A DNA stretch of 64,000 bases from contig OZ059897.1 of the NCBI GenBank assembly GCA_964057225.1, positions 5,766,001 through 5,830,000 of the forward strand, in the 5' to 3' direction. Positions 15,497-32,000 of the stretch are shown here, one piece after another. The stretch comes from Auanema rhodensis. Its lineage: Eukaryota > Animalia > Nematoda. Numbering within the stretch: the first letter of the stretch is position 1; each line of letters starts with the position of its first letter. Made by a program: the position numbers and the translations under genes. Under the pieces are notes generated by a model, which searched no databases, was not told where the DNA came from, and saw only the letters and a program-made list of their open reading frames with translations.

Positions 15497-16264
15497 TGGC
15501 ATTAAGATAAATTTAATATTGATACATGATTGATACATGATTGATACAACTTGAAAAAGATGGAAAAAACTTAATCCAACCTTTGATTGAGCATTCCTTA
15601 TATGTACTGGTTTAAAGCTCATTAGCATATCAAGGTGTTGCCTCACGCACACCACGTCCCGACAGAATCATTTTTAATTTTCGCAAGACCTGAGGTCGGT
15701 TGCATTCTAATACAAGTTTCCCATGATATTCTGAGAAAAATATGTATTAGATATAGTTAAGAACAAGAAAAGTATTATATAATATACAAAGTTTATTAAC
15801 CTTCAAATAGAAATATATTATAATATTAACAAAAATCTTTTGTTGAAACCTTATAGTTAAGTAAAATACAATTTTTGCATCGTTATGCATTATCACAACA
15901 AGGAATTTAAGTATTAACAATCAAAAACGAAAACAAATACCCAAAATAGATATAGAAACAGCTTATTCCCACGGATGCCACACAGATTCAGATTTAGATG
16001 AGATATTACGTGGAAGGTTGTGTTTTCGAGGTAAGTGAGGAGTAGTGTTACCGGAAATCATTAGACCTACAGGGCTCATCTCAACAGAAGAGCAATCCAT
16101 ATCATCTGATGAAGTATTTGTTGGAGAGGAATTAATAGAATCGTCATAAAGAATTTCTGATCGAATCATACGATCTGGGCTGAAACTTTCCTCTGATGAA
16201 GGTGAAGCTTGTAGCAAACCAGCTGACATAACATCTCTGAAAATAAAAAAGAATGTGAACTTTC
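15497..16264. repeat. 768-bp direct repeat, copy 1 (last exon, 3'UTR and downstream flank of bHLH gene A)
   Basis: Near-identical to 18276-19043; identity stops inside the last intron at GAATGTGAACTTTC. Confidence 0.95.
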
Positions 16265-18494
16265 TACTTCAACTTCTGATATACTTTAAGATATTTTCAA
16301 GTTGGTTGTATTTATATTCCCATTGGCTAGATTCGTTCTTCCATTGGCTTTTTTCCTTCTCTAGTTGATACATATATTCTAAAATTATCAATTTAAACAG
16401 AATTTTGTAAATTGTATATTTACGTTTAGATGTGCGGAGATAAATATTCGCTTGTTGTAGTACATCAGCTTTTTCCATTTTGGAAAAAATGTTTGGATTC
16501 TCATCAAGTAAGAATTGCTTCATTTCGCTCAACTCATTGCTTTCACGCTCACGACGTTGTCGTTCTTTTTGAGATTTCTGAGCCTAAAACAAGAAAGTTA
16601 TCTTGTCAACATACAGAGAATAATAAAATAATGAAAAACAAAAAATCACTAACCTTAGAAGAATCATCAGTAGATATAGTAAAGATGGTGTTAGCAAACA
16701 TAGTGTTAATTCTGAAAAATAGATGAATGAGAAGTTTTAAAACTCTTTTAAACATGATTAAGCTAACAGAATAGTGATAAAATTTAAAAATTATAAGCTG
16801 CAGTTATAAACATAATAGCACAAAACGCTATATATGGAGTGGCACAAATCGTGATTCACGTATTTCCTTCCAATATTCGAAAGTTGAGGGTAAATGGAGG
16901 AATCAGCACTAAAGGGAAGAGAGGAATGTTTGTTTCAAAGGTGATGTCAGTTTCAATGGTGCCGTTGGCTTATGATATCTATTGTAAGAAAACGGAATTA
17001 CTATACCTTGAATGAAGTTTAAAAAAAGGAAAAACAATAATATGAGAAACAATTGTCTAATTTAAATATAAATGAATATAATTCCAACGAGTTCGGTATA
17101 TTTGAAGAAAATCGTTCTTAAAATAAGAAAAAACAAAGAATCGATTCAATTCCGTTCAATGAATCTCTTTGAATGGAGGTAAAAATACACTGGGTCGGAA
17201 ATAGAAGTAATTGTAGTTTGATCAGTTAAGGTTCGACAAGTCTTTCGGGGAGGGAAGCTTACATGAAAAGAGAATTTGGCTTTGAAATTAAGAATTGATG
17301 ATCACAAAAGGTTGATATCTCGATATGCATAGAAACTTCATTGAATAAAGATGTTAAGGAGATTTTTGAAAAATTTGGAAGAGCAGACAGAACGAACACA
17401 GAATGTAGAATGACTATGCGAACTTATGATAATGATGAGGTGGTCGAAGGTTTGACTCATGAATGAGAAAAAGAGTTGCATTTCCCATCTAGGTTGCCGA
17501 AAATAACCAAACAGAAGTCAAATAACAATGAATACGTGAGGCAAGAAGAACATGAGCCTAATATGAAGGATCTTATGTCCAAATAGCTTTGGGTCTTATA
17601 CACTTGTACTTTTAAGGTCAACAGAGGTTAAAGAATCTGAAAAAGTTTTGAACAAGCTTTAGATAATTGATTGATAACCTTACAGCATTTTTATCATTTA
17701 TGAACATGTTATGGAAATTTTTCATCAACACTTGGTTCATAAAGTGATAACAGATGACAGCAGATGTATTGTAACCATAGGATATATTTTCTGTTGAAAA
17801 TAAATTTGAATCAAGTTCATAAATATATTTGAAGAGCAATTCAGAGAACATCCAGAGTTTCATATTGTTTTAATAAAAGTTTGAAGATTATAAATAAGTT
17901 GAAAACAATTCCTAAAGTTGATCTTACGATCACTAATTATCAGTACAGCTGGCAAATCGCTTTTTCATTGAAAGGATAGGTTATATTCTCTACTAACAGT
18001 CTTCCCATAAGATAATCTTCTTATAACGTTATGGGATGTATTAGATTCCCATCATGTTCACACCTTGGCTCACAGAAAAAACCTTTGGAGAACTCTACCA
18101 CAGGCTAGATTCCTTACCAGCTCTCTAATATTCTCAGATTTCAAATTATACCTTCATATTAAAATAAAATAAAATAAATAAACTTTGAATAAACAACGAT
18201 CTGATATAAATAAACTTTAATATACCAAAAAATAAAACTTATAATCACATCGCATCATATTCATTCAATAAGGATTGGCATTAAGATAAATTTAATATTG
18301 ATACATGATTGATACATGATTGATACAACTTGAAAAAGATGGAAAAAACTTAATCCAACCTTTGATTAAGCATTCCTTATATGTACTGGTTTAAAGCTCA
18401 TTAGCATATCAAGGTGTTGCCTCACGCACACCACGTCCCGACAGAATCATTTTTAATTTTCGCAAGACCTGAGGTCGATTGCATTCTAATACAA
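15507..18494. repeat. Left arm (~2.99 kb) of a large inverted repeat
   Basis: Reverse complement of 20114-23110 apart from a few SNPs and small indels. ORF-track peptides mirror each other (15963-16229/22388-22654, 16269-16532/22085-22348, 17618-17863/20745-20990). Confidence 0.97.
15963..16701 (-). CDS. HES/REF-1-related bHLH + zipper protein, copy A (4 exons), C-terminal WHPWE
   Basis: Spliced: MFANTIFTISTDDSSK|AQKSQKERQRRERESNELSEMKQFLLDENPNIFSKMEKADVLQQANIYLRTSK|QYMYQLEKEKSQW...QLENILK|DVMSAG...ESVWHPWE*. KMEKADVL is the HES helix-2 signature. Confidence 0.85.
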
Positions 18495-19043
18495 GTTTCC
18501 CATGATATTCTGAGAAAAATATGTATTAGATATAGTTAAGAACAAGAAAAGTATTATATAATATACAAAGTTTATTAACCTTCAAATAGAAATATATTAT
18601 AATATTAACAAAAATCTTTTGTTGAAACCTTATAGTTAAGTAAAATACAATTTTTGCATCGTTATGCATTATCACAACAAGGAATTTAAGTATTAACAAT
18701 CAAAAACGAAAACAAATACCCAAAATAGATATAGAAACAGCTTATTCCCACGGATGCCACACAGATTCGGATTTAGATGAGATATTACGTGGAAGGTTGT
18801 GTTTTCGAGGTAAGTGAGGAGTAGTGTTACCGGAAATCATTAGACCTACAGGGCTCATCTCAACAGAAGAGCAATCCATATCATCTGATGAAGTATTTGT
18901 TGGAGAGGAATTAATAGAATCGTCATAAAGAATTTCTGATCGAATCATACGATCTGGGCTGAAACTTTCCTCTGATGAAGGTGAAGCTTGTAGCAAACCA
19001 GCTGACATAACATCTCTGAAAATAAAAAAGAATGTGAACTTTC
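18276..19043. repeat. 768-bp direct repeat, copy 2 (last exon, 3'UTR and downstream flank of bHLH gene B)
   Basis: Near-identical to 15497-16264. Confidence 0.95.
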
Positions 19044-19516
19044 ATTTTCAAGGCACATCATACCTTAGACGGTATTCATACTGCTGAAGACGCCGAGCTT
19101 GATCTCTAATGATCTCCTCATTTCTTTCGATACAATTAGATTGCTGTCGGATTGTCTCCTCCATTTTAGTAATGATTTCCTCTTTCATTCTAACATTTTC
19201 TGAATAAAATTTGAATAAAATACTGTATATAACGATGTACAAAACTTACGTCCTAAAGAGGAAATATAGTGAACAGTCTGTTCGAGAATATCAGCTTTTT
19301 CCAGCTTGAAAGGATTATTTGGGAAAACAGATAGAAGAATTTGCTTTAAACGATTTATCAGAGCGTTTTCACGTTCACGGCGTTGGCGTTCCTTTTGTGA
19401 CTTTTGAGCCTAAAAATATCATAGTACTACCATATTTGAAAAGAGAAATATTTTAGAGACAAAATTCGAACCTTAGCGGATTCTTCTCCGGAGACTGGTA
19501 ACGTATTTGCAAACAT
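18742..19516 (-). CDS. HES/REF-1-related bHLH + zipper protein, copy B (4 exons, in the palindrome spacer), C-terminal WHPWE
   Basis: Spliced: MFANTLPVSGEESAK|AQKSQKERQRRERENALINRLKQILLSVFPNNPFKLEKADILEQTVHYISSLG|..NVRMKEEIITKMEETIRQQ...YEYRLR|DVMSAG...WHPWE*; canonical KLEKADILE. Confidence 0.88.
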
Positions 19517-20113
19517 GATTTTGAAAGAAAATCTATAAAAATATAAATTAGGTGAGATTTGAATATATACTATATAAAATTGTAAGAGTGAAATATCATA
19601 AAAGATAACCAATTCTAATCAGAATCAAGTCTACCGCTTAGCACGAGAGTGATTGTTCGTTGGTATGAAGGAGTTGTTACAGTTACATGGAGGTTGGACT
19701 TGAGTGGGCGGAGCCAGATTAGGTCAGATGAGAAAAAGTGAATATCAAAGTTGAACATGCTAACGGCAAGAAACACATGAACTAGACAAGTGAAAACAAT
19801 ATTTCAAAATACAAAACTATAAACTTTATGATAATTTGATTATTCCTATAAGTATTGGGCAATGAATAAAAAAAATAGTTTTTATTGTTAACACAAAAAA
19901 AAATGTTTAGCCAAGGGTAATTTTAAATGTTAAACCGGAAATATTTTGTAGTTTGATCATCACGAAATAAAAACTTAACCAATAGGAGTCATACAAAAAA
20001 AATTTTCCTTATAACCTGCGGCGAATAATTCAAATTATATAATGTATCGATTTTATAAATGACTTTTAATTCTTTGTCAGTACTGAATCTGAGATAACAC
20101 TACATCTGGTTCT

Positions 20114-23110
20114 TTGTATTAGAATGCAACCGACCTCAGGTCTTGCGAAAATTAAAAATGATTCTGTCGGGACGTGGTGTGCGTGAGGCAACACCTTGAT
20201 ATGCTAATGAGCTTTAAACCAGTACATATAAGGAATGCTTAATCAAAGGTTGGATTAAGTTTTTTCCATCTTTTTCAAGTTGTATCAATCATGTATCAAT
20301 CATGTATCAATATTAAATTTATCTTAATGCCAATCCTTATTGAATGAATATGATGCGATGTGATTATAAGTTTTATTTTTTGGTATATTAAAGTTTATTT
20401 ATATCAGATCGTTGTTTATTCAAAGTTTATTTATTTTATTTTATTTTAATATGAAGGTATAATTTGAAATCTGAGAATATTAGAGAGCTGGTAAGGAATC
20501 TAGCCTGTGGTAGAGTTCTCCAAAGGTTTTTTCTGTGAGCCAAGGTGTGAACATGATGGGAATCCAATACATCCCATAACGTTATAAGAAGATTATCTTA
20601 TGGGAAGACTGTTAGTAGAGAATATAACCTATCCTTTCAATGAAAAAGCGATTTGCCAGCTGTACTGATAATTAGTGATCGTAAGATCAACTTTAGGAAT
20701 TGTTTTCAACTTATTTATAATCTTCAAACTTTTATTAAAACAATATGAAACTCTGGATGTTCTCTGAATTGCTCTTCAAATATATTTATGAACTTGATTC
20801 AAATTTATTTTCAACAGAAAATATATCCTATGGTTACAATACATCTGCTGTCATCTGTTATCACTTTATGAACCAAGTGTTGATGAAAAATTTCCATAAC
20901 ATGTTCATAAATGATAAAAATGCTGTAAGGTTATCAATCAATTATCTAAAGCTTGTTCAAAACTTTTTCAGATTCTTTAACCTCTGTTGACCTTAAAAGT
21001 ACAAGTGTATAAGACCCAAAGCTATTTGGACATAAGATCCTTCATATTAGGCTCATGTTCTTCTTGCCTCACGTATTCATTGTTATTTGACTTCTGTTTG
21101 GTTATTTTCGGCAACCTAGATGGGAAATGCAACTCTTTTTCTCATTCATGAGTCAAACCTTCGACCACCTCATCATTATCATAAGTTCGCATAGTCATTC
21201 TACATTATGTGTTCGTTCTGTCTGCTCTTCCAAATTTTTCAAAAATCTCCTTAACATCTTTATTCAATGAAGTTTCTATGCATATCGAGATATCAACCTT
21301 TTGTGATCATCAATTCTTAATTTCAAAGCCAAATTCTCTTTTCATGTAAGCTTCCCTCCCCGAAAGACTTGTCGAACCTTAACTGATCAAACTACAATTA
21401 CTTCTATTTCCGACCCAGTGTATTTTTACCTCCATTCAAAGAGATTCATTGAACGGAATTGAATCGATTCTTTGTTTTTTCTTATTTTAAGAACGATTTT
21501 CTTCAAATATACCGAACTCGTTGGAATTATATTCATTTATATTTAAATTAGACAATTGTTTCTCATATTATTGTTGTTTTGTTTTTCCTTTTTTTGAACT
21601 TCATGCAAGGTATAGTAATTCCGTTTTCTTACAATAGATATCATAAGCCAACGGCACCATTGAAACTGACATCACCTTTGAAACAAACATTCCTCTCTTC
21701 CCTTTAGTGCTGATTCCTCCATTTACCCTCAACTTTCGAATATTGGAAGGAAATACGTGAATCACGATTTGTGCCACTCCATATATAGCATTTTGTGCTA
21801 TTATGTTTATAACTGCAGCTTATAATTTTTAAATTTTATCACTATTCTGTTAGCTTAATCATGTTTAAAAGAGTTTTAAAACTTCTCATTCATCTATTTT
21901 TCAGAATTAACACTATGTTTGCTAACACCATCTTTACTATATCTACTGATGATTCTTCTAAGGTTAGTGATTTTTTGTTTTTCATTATTTTATTATTCTC
22001 TGTATGTTGACAAGATAAACTTTCTTGTTTTAGGCTCAGAAATCTCAAAAAGAACGACAACGTCGTGAGCGTGAAAGCAATGAGTTGAGCGAAATGAAGC
22101 AATTCTTACTTGATGAGAATCCAAACATTTTTTCCAAAATGGAAAAAGCTGATGTACTACAACAAGCGAATATTTATCTCCGCACATCTAAACGTAAATA
22201 TACAATTTACAAAATTCTGTTTAAATTGATAATTTTAGAATATATGTATCAACTAGAGAAGGAAAAAAGCCAATGGAAGAACGAATCTAGCCAATGGGAA
22301 TATAAATACAACCAACTTGAAAATATCTTAAAGTATATCAGAAGTTGAAGTAGAAAGTTCACATTCTTTTTTATTTTCAGAGATGTTATGTCAGCTGGTT
22401 TGCTACAAGCTTCACCTTCATCAGAGGAAAGTTTCAGCCCAGATCGTATGATTCGATCAGAAATTCTTTATGACGATTCTATTAATTCCTCTCCAACAAA
22501 TACTTCATCAGATGATATGGATTGCTCTTCTGTTGAGATGAGCCCTGTAGGTCTAATGATTTCCGGTAACACTACTCCTCACTTACCTCGAAAACACAAC
22601 CTTCCACGTAATATCTCATCTAAATCCGAATCTGTGTGGCATCCGTGGGAATAAGCTGTTTCTATATCTATTTTGGGTATTTGTTTTCGTTTTTGATTGT
22701 TAATACTTAAATTCCTTGTTGTGATAATGCATAACGATGCAAAAATTGTATTTTACTTAACTATAAGGTTTCAACAAAAGATTTTTGTTAATATTATAAT
22801 ATATTTCTATTTGAAGGTTAATAAACTTTGTATATTATATAATACTTTTCTTGTTCTTAACTATATCTAATACATATTTTTCTCAGAATATCATGGGAAA
22901 CTTGTATTAGAATGCAACCGACCTCAGGTCTTGCGAAAATTAAAAATGATTCTGTCGGGACGTGGTGTGCGTGAGGCAACACCTTGATATGCTAATGAGC
23001 TTTAAACCAGTACATATAAGGAATGCTTAATCAAAGGTTGGATTAAGTTTTTTCCATCTTTTTCAAGTTGTATCAATCATGTATCAATCATGTATCAATA
23101 TTAAATTTAT
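20114..23110. repeat. Right arm (~3.0 kb) of the large inverted repeat
   Basis: Begins TTGTATTAGAATGC (pairs with 18481-18494) and ends TTAAATTTAT (pairs with 15507-15516). Confidence 0.97.
21915..22654 (+). CDS. HES/REF-1-related bHLH + zipper protein, copy C (inverted duplicate of copy A)
   Basis: TTTTTCAG acceptor ending at 21904, ATG at 21915, three GT-AG introns, same protein as copy A. Confidence 0.85.
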
Positions 23111-28257: not shown

Positions 28258-29051
28258 TTAAAGATAGGGCTGCCACACCGTTTTCCTAGGCTGAGACCGA
28301 ATAGTTGTTTCGAGTTTAGTTGGAGATACAGAATGGCAATGTCTCGAATCTTCTGGGGATTCAGATGGCGATGATGTTGGTGTTAATGGAGTCCATTTGC
28401 CAGAATTTGAGGGCATGTTACCGTTCCCTGTTGCACATGTTGTTGGTGATGTTCCTCGAAAAATGGCAGGATTTGTTTGAATCATAGAATTTCTTAAACG
28501 TAATTATTTTCATGATTTGGAGAAATTGTTGTACTCACCTCAAATGTGTTACAAGTCCCAAATGAAATTGTTGAGCACGAGCATCTGTCTGTGGTGGCAT
28601 CATCATGGCTAGGTATGTGAAAACAGCTCGAGAGCACTGAGTAAATCCTTCTTCTATTCCTTCCAGTCTACCCTTCTCATATGCTTCTTGAGCTTCTGAA
28701 CAGAGACATTAATTCACTACATTTATTCAAATCTTACTAATGACATCTTGAGGAATTCCACGCTGTTGCTGTAATTGGCGAATACTGATTACTGTACGTT
28801 CTAGTATATCCGCTTTTTCAAGTTTAGTGACTCTGAAATTAAAATTAATCTTTTGAACAATGAGAAACTCAATTCTACCTATCATGTGGAGCAAATTGAA
28901 GTAAAAATTCTTTTAAATTATTCAAAGAATCATTTATTCTCTGTCTTCTCATTTTCTCCATCATAGGTTTTTTAATTTTTCTATCACGAGTAGCATGTAG
29001 TAGCAGATCTGCTTGATAAGATGAACGTGATGTTGTCGGAAAACAAGACAT
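28258..29051 (-). CDS. Hairy/E(spl)-family bHLH-Orange transcriptional repressor (lin-22/hairy-like), 4 exons, ends VWQPYL
   Basis: Basic region with the HES proline (RKIKKPMMEKMRRQRINDSLNNLKEFL); helix 2 (KLEKADILERTV); Orange domain (EGFTQCSRAVFTYL...LVTHL); S/T/P-rich linker; WRPW/WRPY-like tail. Confidence 0.92.
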
Positions 29052-32000
29052 TCCTACAAAAAAAAACATTATGCACAGTTTAAAAGGGAATTTAAACAAT
29101 TAAAATCACGAAAAATCGAGAAGTACGAATAAAATTGTTCATCACGACTGGTGAGGAAGAAAATGAATAATGGTAATATTCATTGTTTTATGAAGAAAAA
29201 AAAAGAATTACAATCTTTTGATGAGAAGAGGAATACATAAATGAAGTGAGAAAGACGAAAAAACATGACTACCGTACCCTTGTCTAGCACCCAGTGGCCG
29301 TATTTGGCAACAACAGAAGTTCAGCTCAGCCATGTTGGCTTCAGATTTTTATCTTAATGAGCCTATTAAGGTACTACGTCATGGACGGTTCCCTCGAAAA
29401 CGCAACGTTCATAAGATTTATGTCACATTTCCACTATTTTAAAAAAGAAAGCTAGATGAGATTGCATACAGGTTGTCAAGCGATTGGTTATAAATTAAAA
29501 TGTAAATGTTTACAGACACAATGCTTCGAATATTTTTTTTTAGAAAAGAAGCTTCAGCAGCATCATTGATAGAAGTGAATCGAAACTCTGAAAGGGCTTG
29601 AAAAATGTTTTGTGTAAAGCTTTCGTAATGAAGTAAATTCTTTCGATAGAAAAATTGAAATATAAATCCAAGTAGATGTCAGACACAAGTAGTTAAAAAG
29701 TAGAGATTACTGTAGAATAGTGAAAAAACAGTCTTAGTTGTTGGAAAAGGAGATGAACATAAGTATGAATATAGAAAGAATAACTAATAAGTAGTTGCTA
29801 ACTAGAGTTTCAGATGAATCACAGCTCAAACACGGAAGAACGTGATAAGACTGAAGACCGGCACGCTTATTAAGACGATAAAACCGCCTCTGCCTAATTG
29901 ACTAATTATCTGTGACGAAGGCTAATCACAAATCCTCTTAAGATGATTCTCTCTTTGCGGCTCCGTCCAACAACTTTCTCATGACCTCTTACACACGAAG
30001 CTTATCATACAAGTGGCATGCGACAAGGTTCCTTGCAAGTCAAATACCGTAATCGCCATAGGTACATATACGCATGCAGAACAATTTCTGAAATTTCAAG
30101 ACCAAGCAAAGTTTTTCATCAAGAATGAAAATCTTTGAGTTTTTTAATTGCCAGACAAGAATATAGAGTCTTCAAAAAGATCTTCTAAAATTGATTGTGA
30201 TTGAGATTTTAGATGAGAGAGACGATCAATTGCTAAACTACAGGAAACGCCGTATATTATTTATGAAAACGTTCAAGCTTGTGGAGCAAGAACGATAGAA
30301 AACATGAAAAACGACAACAGAGGAGGTTGGAAAAGGAACCATACACATGGAATAGAAGATGATAAAACCGGATGAAATGTTTGTAATTTATCCTGGAAAC
30401 TCAAAACATTTTTCTCTCCACCTACTCAAAAGTTCATATTACAGATATGAAATGTTGGGCATGTAAGTAGATCGGTATACGAGCTTGTTAAGAAATTTAA
30501 AAATACTTCAAAAACTAGGAGAGGCGTTTATTCATTTCATAAATATGGAAATAGAAGCTGTTGGAATTAATGTATCAAAACATTTTAAAGAAACAGAGTT
30601 AGTAAATGTGATTGAACGAGGATTGACCGACTGATGGCTTGTCGGAAGTGTGGTAAGGTCGCAAAGGATTTGATGGGTGGGACGAGGTGATGGCATCAAG
30701 TCGGATGGACAACCACTGTTCTACAGCTGGTAACGAGAAGATATGAAGTGAGAAAAGAAGATTATATTATAAATAGATAGAGATAAAGAAATAGTTTGAG
30801 AGAAAAGAAGAGGTCGAGAGATGTTAGCTATAGCCTGAATCAAAAGACAGAGCGCTGTGTGATGTCGTTGACTGGTTGTAATGGTTAGCAGAGAAACAAG
30901 CGGCTCATCAAAGGGCTTGTCCCGACCCTACTATTAACAGGCAATATTCTGTTCGGTGACAAATGTGGAAGAGGGAAGAAACAGAAAACGGAAGATGAAG
31001 AGAAAGAAGAAGCTCGTAGAATCATTCGTCAGCAACTTAAGTGCGATTCCGGCAGACTTCGGGAAGTATAGAAAATCACATGGCTACGACAGGAGAACAC
31101 GCAACAGCTACTCTGTTCCTTGCTTAGAGCACATTAATTTCCACAAAGACATCTCTTACTTGACCGATAAAACGAACGAGAAACATGATGAGGCAAACTA
31201 CAACGAGCGAAAAAAAGTTGGAAGTGTTTAAGAAGTCAGAGTCTGTTCAGATCATAAACGCTAGAGCAAGGAATTCTTGGCGCAAACCACAAAAGACATT
31301 CGAAGAGGGGGCGTGACGATGACACTTAAACACTATCCCTCTGATGGCCAACGACCGATATGAAAACCGTTAACTACAGTACAAGTGTTGAAGTTTTGTT
31401 TTTTTATTGGAGAACATGGGGGGATAGTCTACTATAGTCAAAATTTTGCAAACAACTAAACAGATTGTTTAGGTATATCCAGACATTTTTTTTTGCTGTA
31501 TAAAATAACTGTCCTTCAGACGCACTCTATACTTAGCGCTTCTTGATCATTAAAAATAGCACTACGCAAAAAATCTGAACGAACGAACATGCTATCCTTT
31601 TACAAAGGTCTATTATACTCTTCTCTTTAACTACGTCTAAAGTCAATGAGCTGGAGGTAAAACATGTGAACTGGTCAGAGTCTTCCACGATTGACATATT
31701 CAGGCTGTTATTTTAATGTTTTCGGATGTACAGCTCAATATCGTGCAAAAAAGCCCATGAGCGAACCGAAGTAGAAAAAAAAAGATTTTTCAATTTTTTG
31801 TCGGTTTCCGACAAAAGAGGATCCACAAGGTCTGCCTGATGAAGCAGCTGTCTGCTTTGTATACGGGTGCGAATGTTTCTTCTGTCTCAACATGTTCACA
31901 TTTTATTTCTTGTTCAATTTTCGGTAGATGTTGCCATCTATGTCCTGTTGATAAGATGAGGCGCTAATTTTTATTTGTTTTCCTATGTTGTAATAGAGCT

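Follow-up and report, generated by a model that had tools for sequence, protein, structure and literature searches.

The locus described here raises the question of what could stabilise the dimer of a HES-type protein that has no Orange domain. HES repressors are the main Notch effectors, and stabilising dimers and selecting partners are the roles usually assigned to their Orange domain. The window analysed, 64,000 nucleotides (nt) of the nematode Auanema rhodensis (assembly GCA_964057225.1, contig OZ059897.1, positions 5,766,001 to 5,830,000), contains three genes, A, B and C, in which a basic helix-loop-helix (bHLH) exon is followed by an exon of heptad repeats and by a tail ending in WHPWE; positions below are those of the window. 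A previous interpretation made from the letters of the DNA (the sequence-only reading) had seen here the replacement of the Orange domain by a zipper exon. Of this, the lack of Orange similarity in exon 3 was confirmed; replacement itself was not borne out, the REF-1 family of nematodes being also without Orange. It is probable, in our view, that A, B and C are paralogues, all expressed, in a small and rapidly evolving family of nematode repressors related to HES and REF-1, and that their zipper-like third exon works in the manner proposed below.

The exon models follow canonical GT..AG borders and nematode-type TTTTCAG/TTTTAG acceptors (Table 1). The evidence from RNA consists of contigs from four small public sequencing runs of one study, aligned to 18700-22700. 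These contigs skip precisely all three modelled introns of B and all three of C, and no alternative joint, skipping of exon 3 included, was seen in them across that interval. Contigs without introns are copies of spliced RNA, indicating that the exon models are right and that both the B and the A/C types are transcribed. A, B and C are real, expressed genes. The contigs are unable to rank expression levels, and reads of A are indistinguishable from those of C; A is an inverted duplicate of C, identical in exons 1-3 and with one mismatch in exon 4. Translation of the minus strand over 19066-19200 gives one open frame, the heptad string of B, with stops in the other two frames, while frame 3 of 22239-22348 yields the string of A/C. 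Both strings had been given by the sequence-only reading, which had put exon 3 of B at about 19066-19199; its span has been corrected to 19064-19199. A pseudogene reading was dropped for B, and largely for A/C, in view of the intact frames and the spliced contigs.

The architecture had been called unusual, and the searches agree. An exhaustive HMMER (hidden Markov model) search with exon 2 of B against 1.84 billion representatives returned 28 matches, a single one of them close: an unnamed protein of 193 amino acids (aa) from Auanema sp. JU1783, referred to here as P0001, which is 78% identical to exon 2 of B. Over the bHLH domain, identity to P0001 is 75-78% for B and 58% for A/C. Nearly all representative matches of the bHLH searches are HES proteins. 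Word-index protein searches with P0001, with P0006 (a two-bHLH protein, see below) and with the family alignment A2 found only the queries themselves and one canonical HES protein (P0031), and hence no further orthologues and no link to named REF-1 proteins. The combination of a HES-type bHLH domain, a zipper-like exon and a W-x-P-W tail was thus met in a single other database protein, P0001, and none of the papers searched describes a zipper on a bHLH protein of HES or REF-1 type.

The gene of P0001 has the same four exons in the same phases, two of them with the sizes found in C (160 and 94 nt). Some 5.4 kb upstream of the P0001 gene there is a canonical HES gene, whose Orange-like exon is 92% identical to that of gene D, the canonical HES gene of the window. 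The shared gene structure and the neighbouring HES gene indicate that the P0001 locus and the locus in the window are orthologous. Searched against the window's own genome, P0001 matched A, B and C only; the zipper-type gene has been amplified to three copies in Auanema rhodensis.

By its residues the bHLH domain of A/C and B is of HES type, as had been claimed for helix 2. HES-1 (2mh3) is the best solved relative of exon 2 of B (E 9e-5), of exon 2 of C (E 1.5e-3) and of P0001 (E 2e-4); USF2 reaches an E-value of only 0.034 with P0001, in an alignment that extends through the USF2 zipper. The Pfam HLH profile scores 46.5 bits for exon 2 of B and 23.1 bits for exon 2 of C (cut-off 20.7), with one HLH stretch each in B, C and P0001. 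Helix 2 of A/C and B carries an EKAD(I/V)L-type motif. In the basic region, which is the same in A/C as in B, Lys5, Glu9, Arg12 and Arg13 are kept and Pro6 is changed to Ser: A/C, B and P0001 read Lys-Ser where every canonical HES match in the domain listing reads Lys-Pro, in agreement with the earlier remark that the HES proline is missing. In a bHLH tree the domains of A/C, B, P0001 and Pristionchus pacificus are set apart from canonical HES (support 98/97); the tree is poorly resolved and, because of long-branch warnings and few columns, is taken as a hint only.

The case for a zipper starts from the heptad register. The Leu of EKAD(I/V)L in helix 2 was set as 'a' and the count was carried onward through exon 3, using joined sequences locally; searches and folding of B and A/C were done exon by exon. 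In P0001 the 'a' positions read L V I L I N L and the 'd' positions T A L Q L L, a textbook dimer-zipper pattern in which the two stripes are filled and, as in classic dimeric zippers, one 'a' is Asn. The corresponding rows are L I V I I I I L L ('a') and T L K M Q N Q Y ('d') in B, and L L M K S Y L ('a') and A S L W W L ('d') in A/C. Thus all nine consecutive 'a' positions of B are aliphatic, and A/C presents L-W-W-L at 'd' in exon 3; neither exon 3 is a textbook leucine zipper. The hydrophobic register is unbroken from helix 2 into exon 3 in B, A/C and P0001, as it is in Max, Myc and USF, and exon 3 extends helix 2 by four heptads in A/C and P0001 and by the six already noted in B.

Significance was assessed with 20,000 shuffles of the same residues. 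For B both the best single stripe (9/9) and the hydrophobic power at 3.5 residues gave p = 0.0001. The hydrophobic power of P0001 gave p = 0.002-0.0075, and that of A/C was weaker (p = 0.009-0.02). The maximum of the power lies at 3.5 residues, not at 3.6.

Structure prediction points in the same direction. AlphaFold2 was run on P0001, with the exon products of the window added as alignment rows. The model has a helix at residues 12-45, a loop, and one uninterrupted helix of 57 residues (55-111) that takes in helix 2 and all of exon 3; the predicted local distance difference test score (pLDDT) is 87-98 over residues 61-100, and the rest of the protein is disordered. This bHLH-zipper protomer and the register count support a helix continuous with helix 2. 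Exon 3 of C, folded alone, gave one helix (residues 2-29, pLDDT 94.6). A Foldseek search with the P0001 model ranked bHLH-zipper chains of USF2 and MYC:MAX at the top; in the structure comparisons a MITF chain was matched as well. By VIA-align the model superposes on a whole Myc/Max chain (1nkp) over 83 residues (Z 6.5, root-mean-square deviation 2.0 Å) and on 6g6k over 84 residues (Z 6.3, 1.9 Å). Exon 3 against solved structures gave chance helical matches only, and neither exon 3 nor exon 4 had a match in Pfam even at E <= 10.

The length of exon 3 changes in whole heptads. It is 136 nt in B against 94 nt in C and P0001, and the difference of 42 nt equals two heptads. Within exon 3 of B a 42-nt tandem duplication, which keeps the register, lies at about 19078-19161; at offset 42 the self-identity is 0.46, and the best window has 15/21 matches. 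In A/C the pair of Trp heptads corresponds to a 21-nt repeat (Tandem Repeats Finder: 2.0 copies, 80% match, 22257-22297), with a self-identity of 0.56 at offset 21 against about 0.3 at other offsets; the 21-nt periodicity noticed previously is therefore real, but short. No self-similarity at offset 21 or 42 was found in exon 3 of P0001.

The tails end in WHPWE in A, B and C and in WQPWQ in P0001. Trp, Pro and Trp of WRPW are kept at both ends, another residue takes the place of Arg, and the last Trp is followed by one more residue; to this extent the tail is WRPW-like, as had been proposed. Exon 4 of C and the P0001 tail are 53% identical. The blocks P-D-R-M-I, T-P-H-L-P-R-K-H and E-S-V-W-x-P-W are common to C (22381-22654) and P0001 (residues 103-193). 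Conserved blocks of this kind look like linear motifs.

The mechanism that we propose combines these elements. Exon 2 supplies the HES-type bHLH domain, with Lys5, Glu9, Arg12 and Arg13 retained and Ser for Pro6. Exon 3, whose position and phase are kept in the orthologue, would prolong helix 2 by heptads, as is in part seen above. The prolonged helix may pair into a parallel coiled coil, giving the dimer stability and contributing to partner selection, which is the job of Orange in canonical HES proteins and has been suggested for the second bHLH in REF-1. The disordered last exon, ending in W-x-P-W and one residue, may recruit Groucho/UNC-37, and binding to an E-box or N-box and control by Notch might be expected.

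Several points weigh against this reading. The 'd' positions of exon 3 in B (K M Q N Q Y) and the 'a' positions in A/C (M K S Y L) are largely polar, so that stable homodimeric zippers are doubtful for both; for A/C and P0001 the best a+d count reaches only marginal significance (p = 0.02, exon 3 alone); exon 2 of B ends with a Gly; and the outgroup is one sequence, P0001. The Foldseek E-values of 0.14-0.3 are not significant, and since a Z of about 6 is common for long helices, the superposition on Myc/Max speaks of compatibility and is not proof. B and A/C were folded by exon only, so the continuity of the helix across exons 2 and 3 rests on the register and on the P0001 model, and the structure models are monomers. 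The contact of WHPWE with Groucho and the DNA target are taken from family knowledge. Some of these points would also suit a reading in which exon 3 is a helical extension and not a dimer zipper. It would then serve as a rigid spacer or, being amphipathic on one side, dock on a second protein or on the HLH of its own chain, the heptad look arising from one stripe and from the 21/42-nt duplications. B and A/C each have a single hydrophobic core stripe out of two, recent internal duplications create periodicity by themselves, and the marginal a+d count and the monomeric models of P0001 and of exon 3 of C are in keeping with it. However, exon 3 of P0001 is free of the offset-21 and offset-42 self-similarity and yet has both stripes filled and an Asn at 'a'. 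In B, A/C and P0001 the register follows without a break from those positions of helix 2 that form the dimer interface, the periodicity peaks at 3.5 and not 3.6 residues, and the whole P0001 protomer superposes on Myc/Max chains. We regard a helix without zipper function as unlikely, though it deserves to be kept in mind.

Exon 3 could also be a highly degenerate remnant of Orange, in effect its first helix, as it stands in Orange's place between helix 2 and a Ser/Pro-rich tail. Gene D provides the comparison: its third coding exon can be aligned well to the Orange regions of eleven further HES proteins, most of them from nematodes, and is far more conserved (92% against the Auanema neighbour gene) than the A/B/C family. 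Pfam found no Orange domain in exon 3; the Pfam Hairy_orange profile misses the evident Orange-like exon of D too, so that this absence is weak evidence. A profile of the three exon 3 sequences, compared with twelve (mostly nematode) Orange regions, gave an hhalign probability of 0.0. In the P0001 model, moreover, exon 3 and helix 2 make up one straight helix, with no linker and no two-helix unit of its own beyond it, and the intron positions of A, B and C differ from those of D. No Orange domain is present after helix 2 in A, B or C, and descent of exon 3 from one appears hardly credible. It might further be argued that A/C drifts under relaxed constraint, with a Trp-bearing exon 3 of no function of its own, and that B is the sole working gene. 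The bHLH score of A/C is half that of B (23.1 against 46.5 bits), its identity to P0001 is lower, its branch in the tree is long, and its Trp heptads derive from the 21-nt duplication. Against this, the frame is intact in two copies that differ by 1 nt, correctly spliced contigs resembling complementary DNA (cDNA) occur in the four runs, the basic region equals that of B, and exon 3 keeps its 94 nt with a final heptad matching P0001. Relaxed A/C genes are accordingly considered improbable. The preferred reading remains that of a zipper-like exon in three working paralogues.

Within this preferred reading the duplicated zippers have diverged, B having aliphatic 'a' and polar 'd' positions and A/C having Leu-Trp-Trp-Leu at 'd' and polar 'a' positions. 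The pairing preferences of B and A/C probably differ from those of the single-copy ancestor. By register count, all-polar core layers number none in B:A/C, four in B:B and two in A/C:A/C, and the half-polar cores argue against strong homodimer zippers, leaving room for a heterodimer. A broader scenario may be drawn from this, in which an Orange-less nematode E(spl)-like lineage stabilised its dimers differently by rhabditid branch, Auanema using a zipper exon, Caenorhabditis and Pristionchus a second bHLH, and in which complementary decay of the zippers then led to a preferred, Myc:Max-like B:A/C heterodimer of young paralogues. It is put forward tentatively, as a scenario with the odds against it.

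Table 1. Coordinates in the window of genes A to D and of the individual exons of B and C.
Feature	Coordinates	Strand	Length	Content and basis
Gene C	four exons, listed below	+	191 aa	
C exon 1	21915-21962	+		start codon, N-terminus MFAN...; intron 1 joint in contigs of three runs
C exon 2	22034-22193	+		whole bHLH: basic region without Pro, helix 1, loop, helix 2
C exon 3	22239-22332	+	94 nt	heptad helix, L-W-W-L at 'd'; contig joints at both flanking introns
C exon 4	22381-22654	+		disordered tail with conserved short motifs, end WHPWE and stop codon
Gene B	four exons, listed below	-	204 aa	
B exon 1	19472-19516	-		gene model and contig joints
B exon 2	19250-19409	-		bHLH domain
B exon 3	19064-19199	-	136 nt	six-heptad helix, aliphatic 'a' positions; contig joints at both introns
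B exon 4	18742-19015	-		DNA same as C exon 4 (0 mismatches / 274 nt)
Gene A	15963-16701 (exons 16654-16701, 16424-16583, 16285-16378, 15963-16236)	-	as C	
Gene D	28258-29099	-		canonical HES/LIN-22-type; Pro in basic region; Orange-like exon 28538-28696; tail VWQPYL

The arrangement of the copies was also examined. The arms of A and C form an inverted repeat with almost no mismatches (15506-16600 / 22014-23110), with B and a spacer of about 1.6 kb between them. A direct repeat of about 770 nt, nearly identical in A and B (15497-16265 and 18276-19044), covers exon 4, the 3' untranslated region and downstream DNA. The identity breaks off within intron 3, some 26 nt before exon 4, indicating that B is chimeric: exons 1-3 are old, and the last exon was copied in recently. 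An 11-nt unit, ATTGATACATG, repeated 2.8 times, recurs in every copy of the duplicated block, at about 15520 (A), 18297-18327 (B) and about 23070 (the C arm), and an inverted copy lies at 20281-20311. Elsewhere in the genome HLH matches of equal score form three more pairs, the two members lying on opposite strands at distances from a few kb up to 22 kb (G000, C5:11601833/11605012, C7:7370133/7392571 and C3:18863507/18866500); inverted duplication of bHLH genes seems to be recurrent in Auanema rhodensis.

At the 5' ends, cDNA-like contigs stop at AG acceptors a few bases 5' of the start codons of C (21899-21905) and B (19533). The contig of C has about five extra letters and one mismatch at 21899-21905, which would fit spliced-leader trans-splicing; the letters themselves could not be read. 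The window has 22 matches to the LAG-1/CSL consensus RTGGGAA, where 12.7 would be expected. Each arm has two such sites in coding sequence (tail and exon 3), and there are none in the approximately 600 nt upstream of B. The coding sites at 22645-22651, 22294-22300, 15966-15972, 16317-16323 and 18745-18751 are the codons of Pro-Trp-Glu (tail) or Gln-Trp-Glu (exon 3). Because these matches are codons, counts per arm overstate the number of candidate regulatory sites.

A zipper exon on a HES-type helix 2, with a Groucho-type tail, would be a third solution beside Orange and a second bHLH, and hence a natural experiment in the exchange of bHLH dimerisation modules. The young paralogue pair, whose zippers differ by exactly two heptads and in which core stripe is hydrophobic, offers a test of how partner specificity evolves. 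The interest is a specialist one: the family refines bHLH classification and the evolution of nematode Notch effectors, and overturns nothing.

Among known systems, the HES proteins (HES-1, C. elegans LIN-22) share with A, B and C the type of bHLH, HES-1 being the nearest solved relative, with an EKADIL-type helix 2 and Lys5, Glu9 and Arg13 retained. A Ser/Pro-rich disordered tail ending in W-x-P-W is also common to both, and a canonical HES gene adjoins the three genes. Unlike HES proteins, A, B and C lack the basic-region Pro and the Orange domain, helix 2 continues as a helix of four to six heptads, and one extra residue follows the final Trp.

C. elegans has one HES gene, lin-22, and in addition the REF-1 family of divergent HES relatives, which have two bHLH domains and no Orange (PMC3606163; PMC4172395); the second bHLH has been suggested as a substitute for Orange (PMC3606163; PMC4172395), and REF-1 proteins act together with UNC-37/Groucho (PMC11457946). 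Two of the weaker matches in our searches, P0002 of Pristionchus pacificus and P0006 of C. auriculariae, are two-bHLH proteins. Like A, B and C, the REF-1 family (REF-1, HLH-25 to HLH-29) and P0002/P0006 are divergent relatives of HES that are specific to nematodes and lack both Orange and the Pro of the basic region. The tails of P0002 and P0006 likewise end in [FW]-x-P-W and one residue, the four tails being WHPWE, WQPWQ, FRPWM and WQPWL; P0002 has in common with A/C, B and P0001 a Q-R-R-x-R-E junction of basic region and helix 1, and its only matches in the Auanema rhodensis genome are A, B and C. A literature search for a REF-1 tail motif returned no match, and no such motif is used as evidence here. 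In contrast to REF-1, with two bHLH domains and no zipper, A, B and C have one bHLH domain and a heptad exon, and the similarity to the REF-1-type two-bHLH proteins is weak (37-39% over one domain). The A/B/C family may be seen as a single-bHLH, zipper-bearing counterpart of the REF-1 group.

From the group B bHLH-zipper proteins (Max, Myc, USF, MITF/TFE) A, B and C differ, together with P0001, in having Lys and not His at position 5 and HES-1 as nearest relative, and further in their Groucho-type tail and in core stripes that are half polar in B and A/C. The likeness lies in the zipper: as in group B, helix 2 runs on into the heptad helix with the register preserved, and P0001, with its Asn at 'a', gives a model that superposes on whole Myc/Max and USF2 chains.

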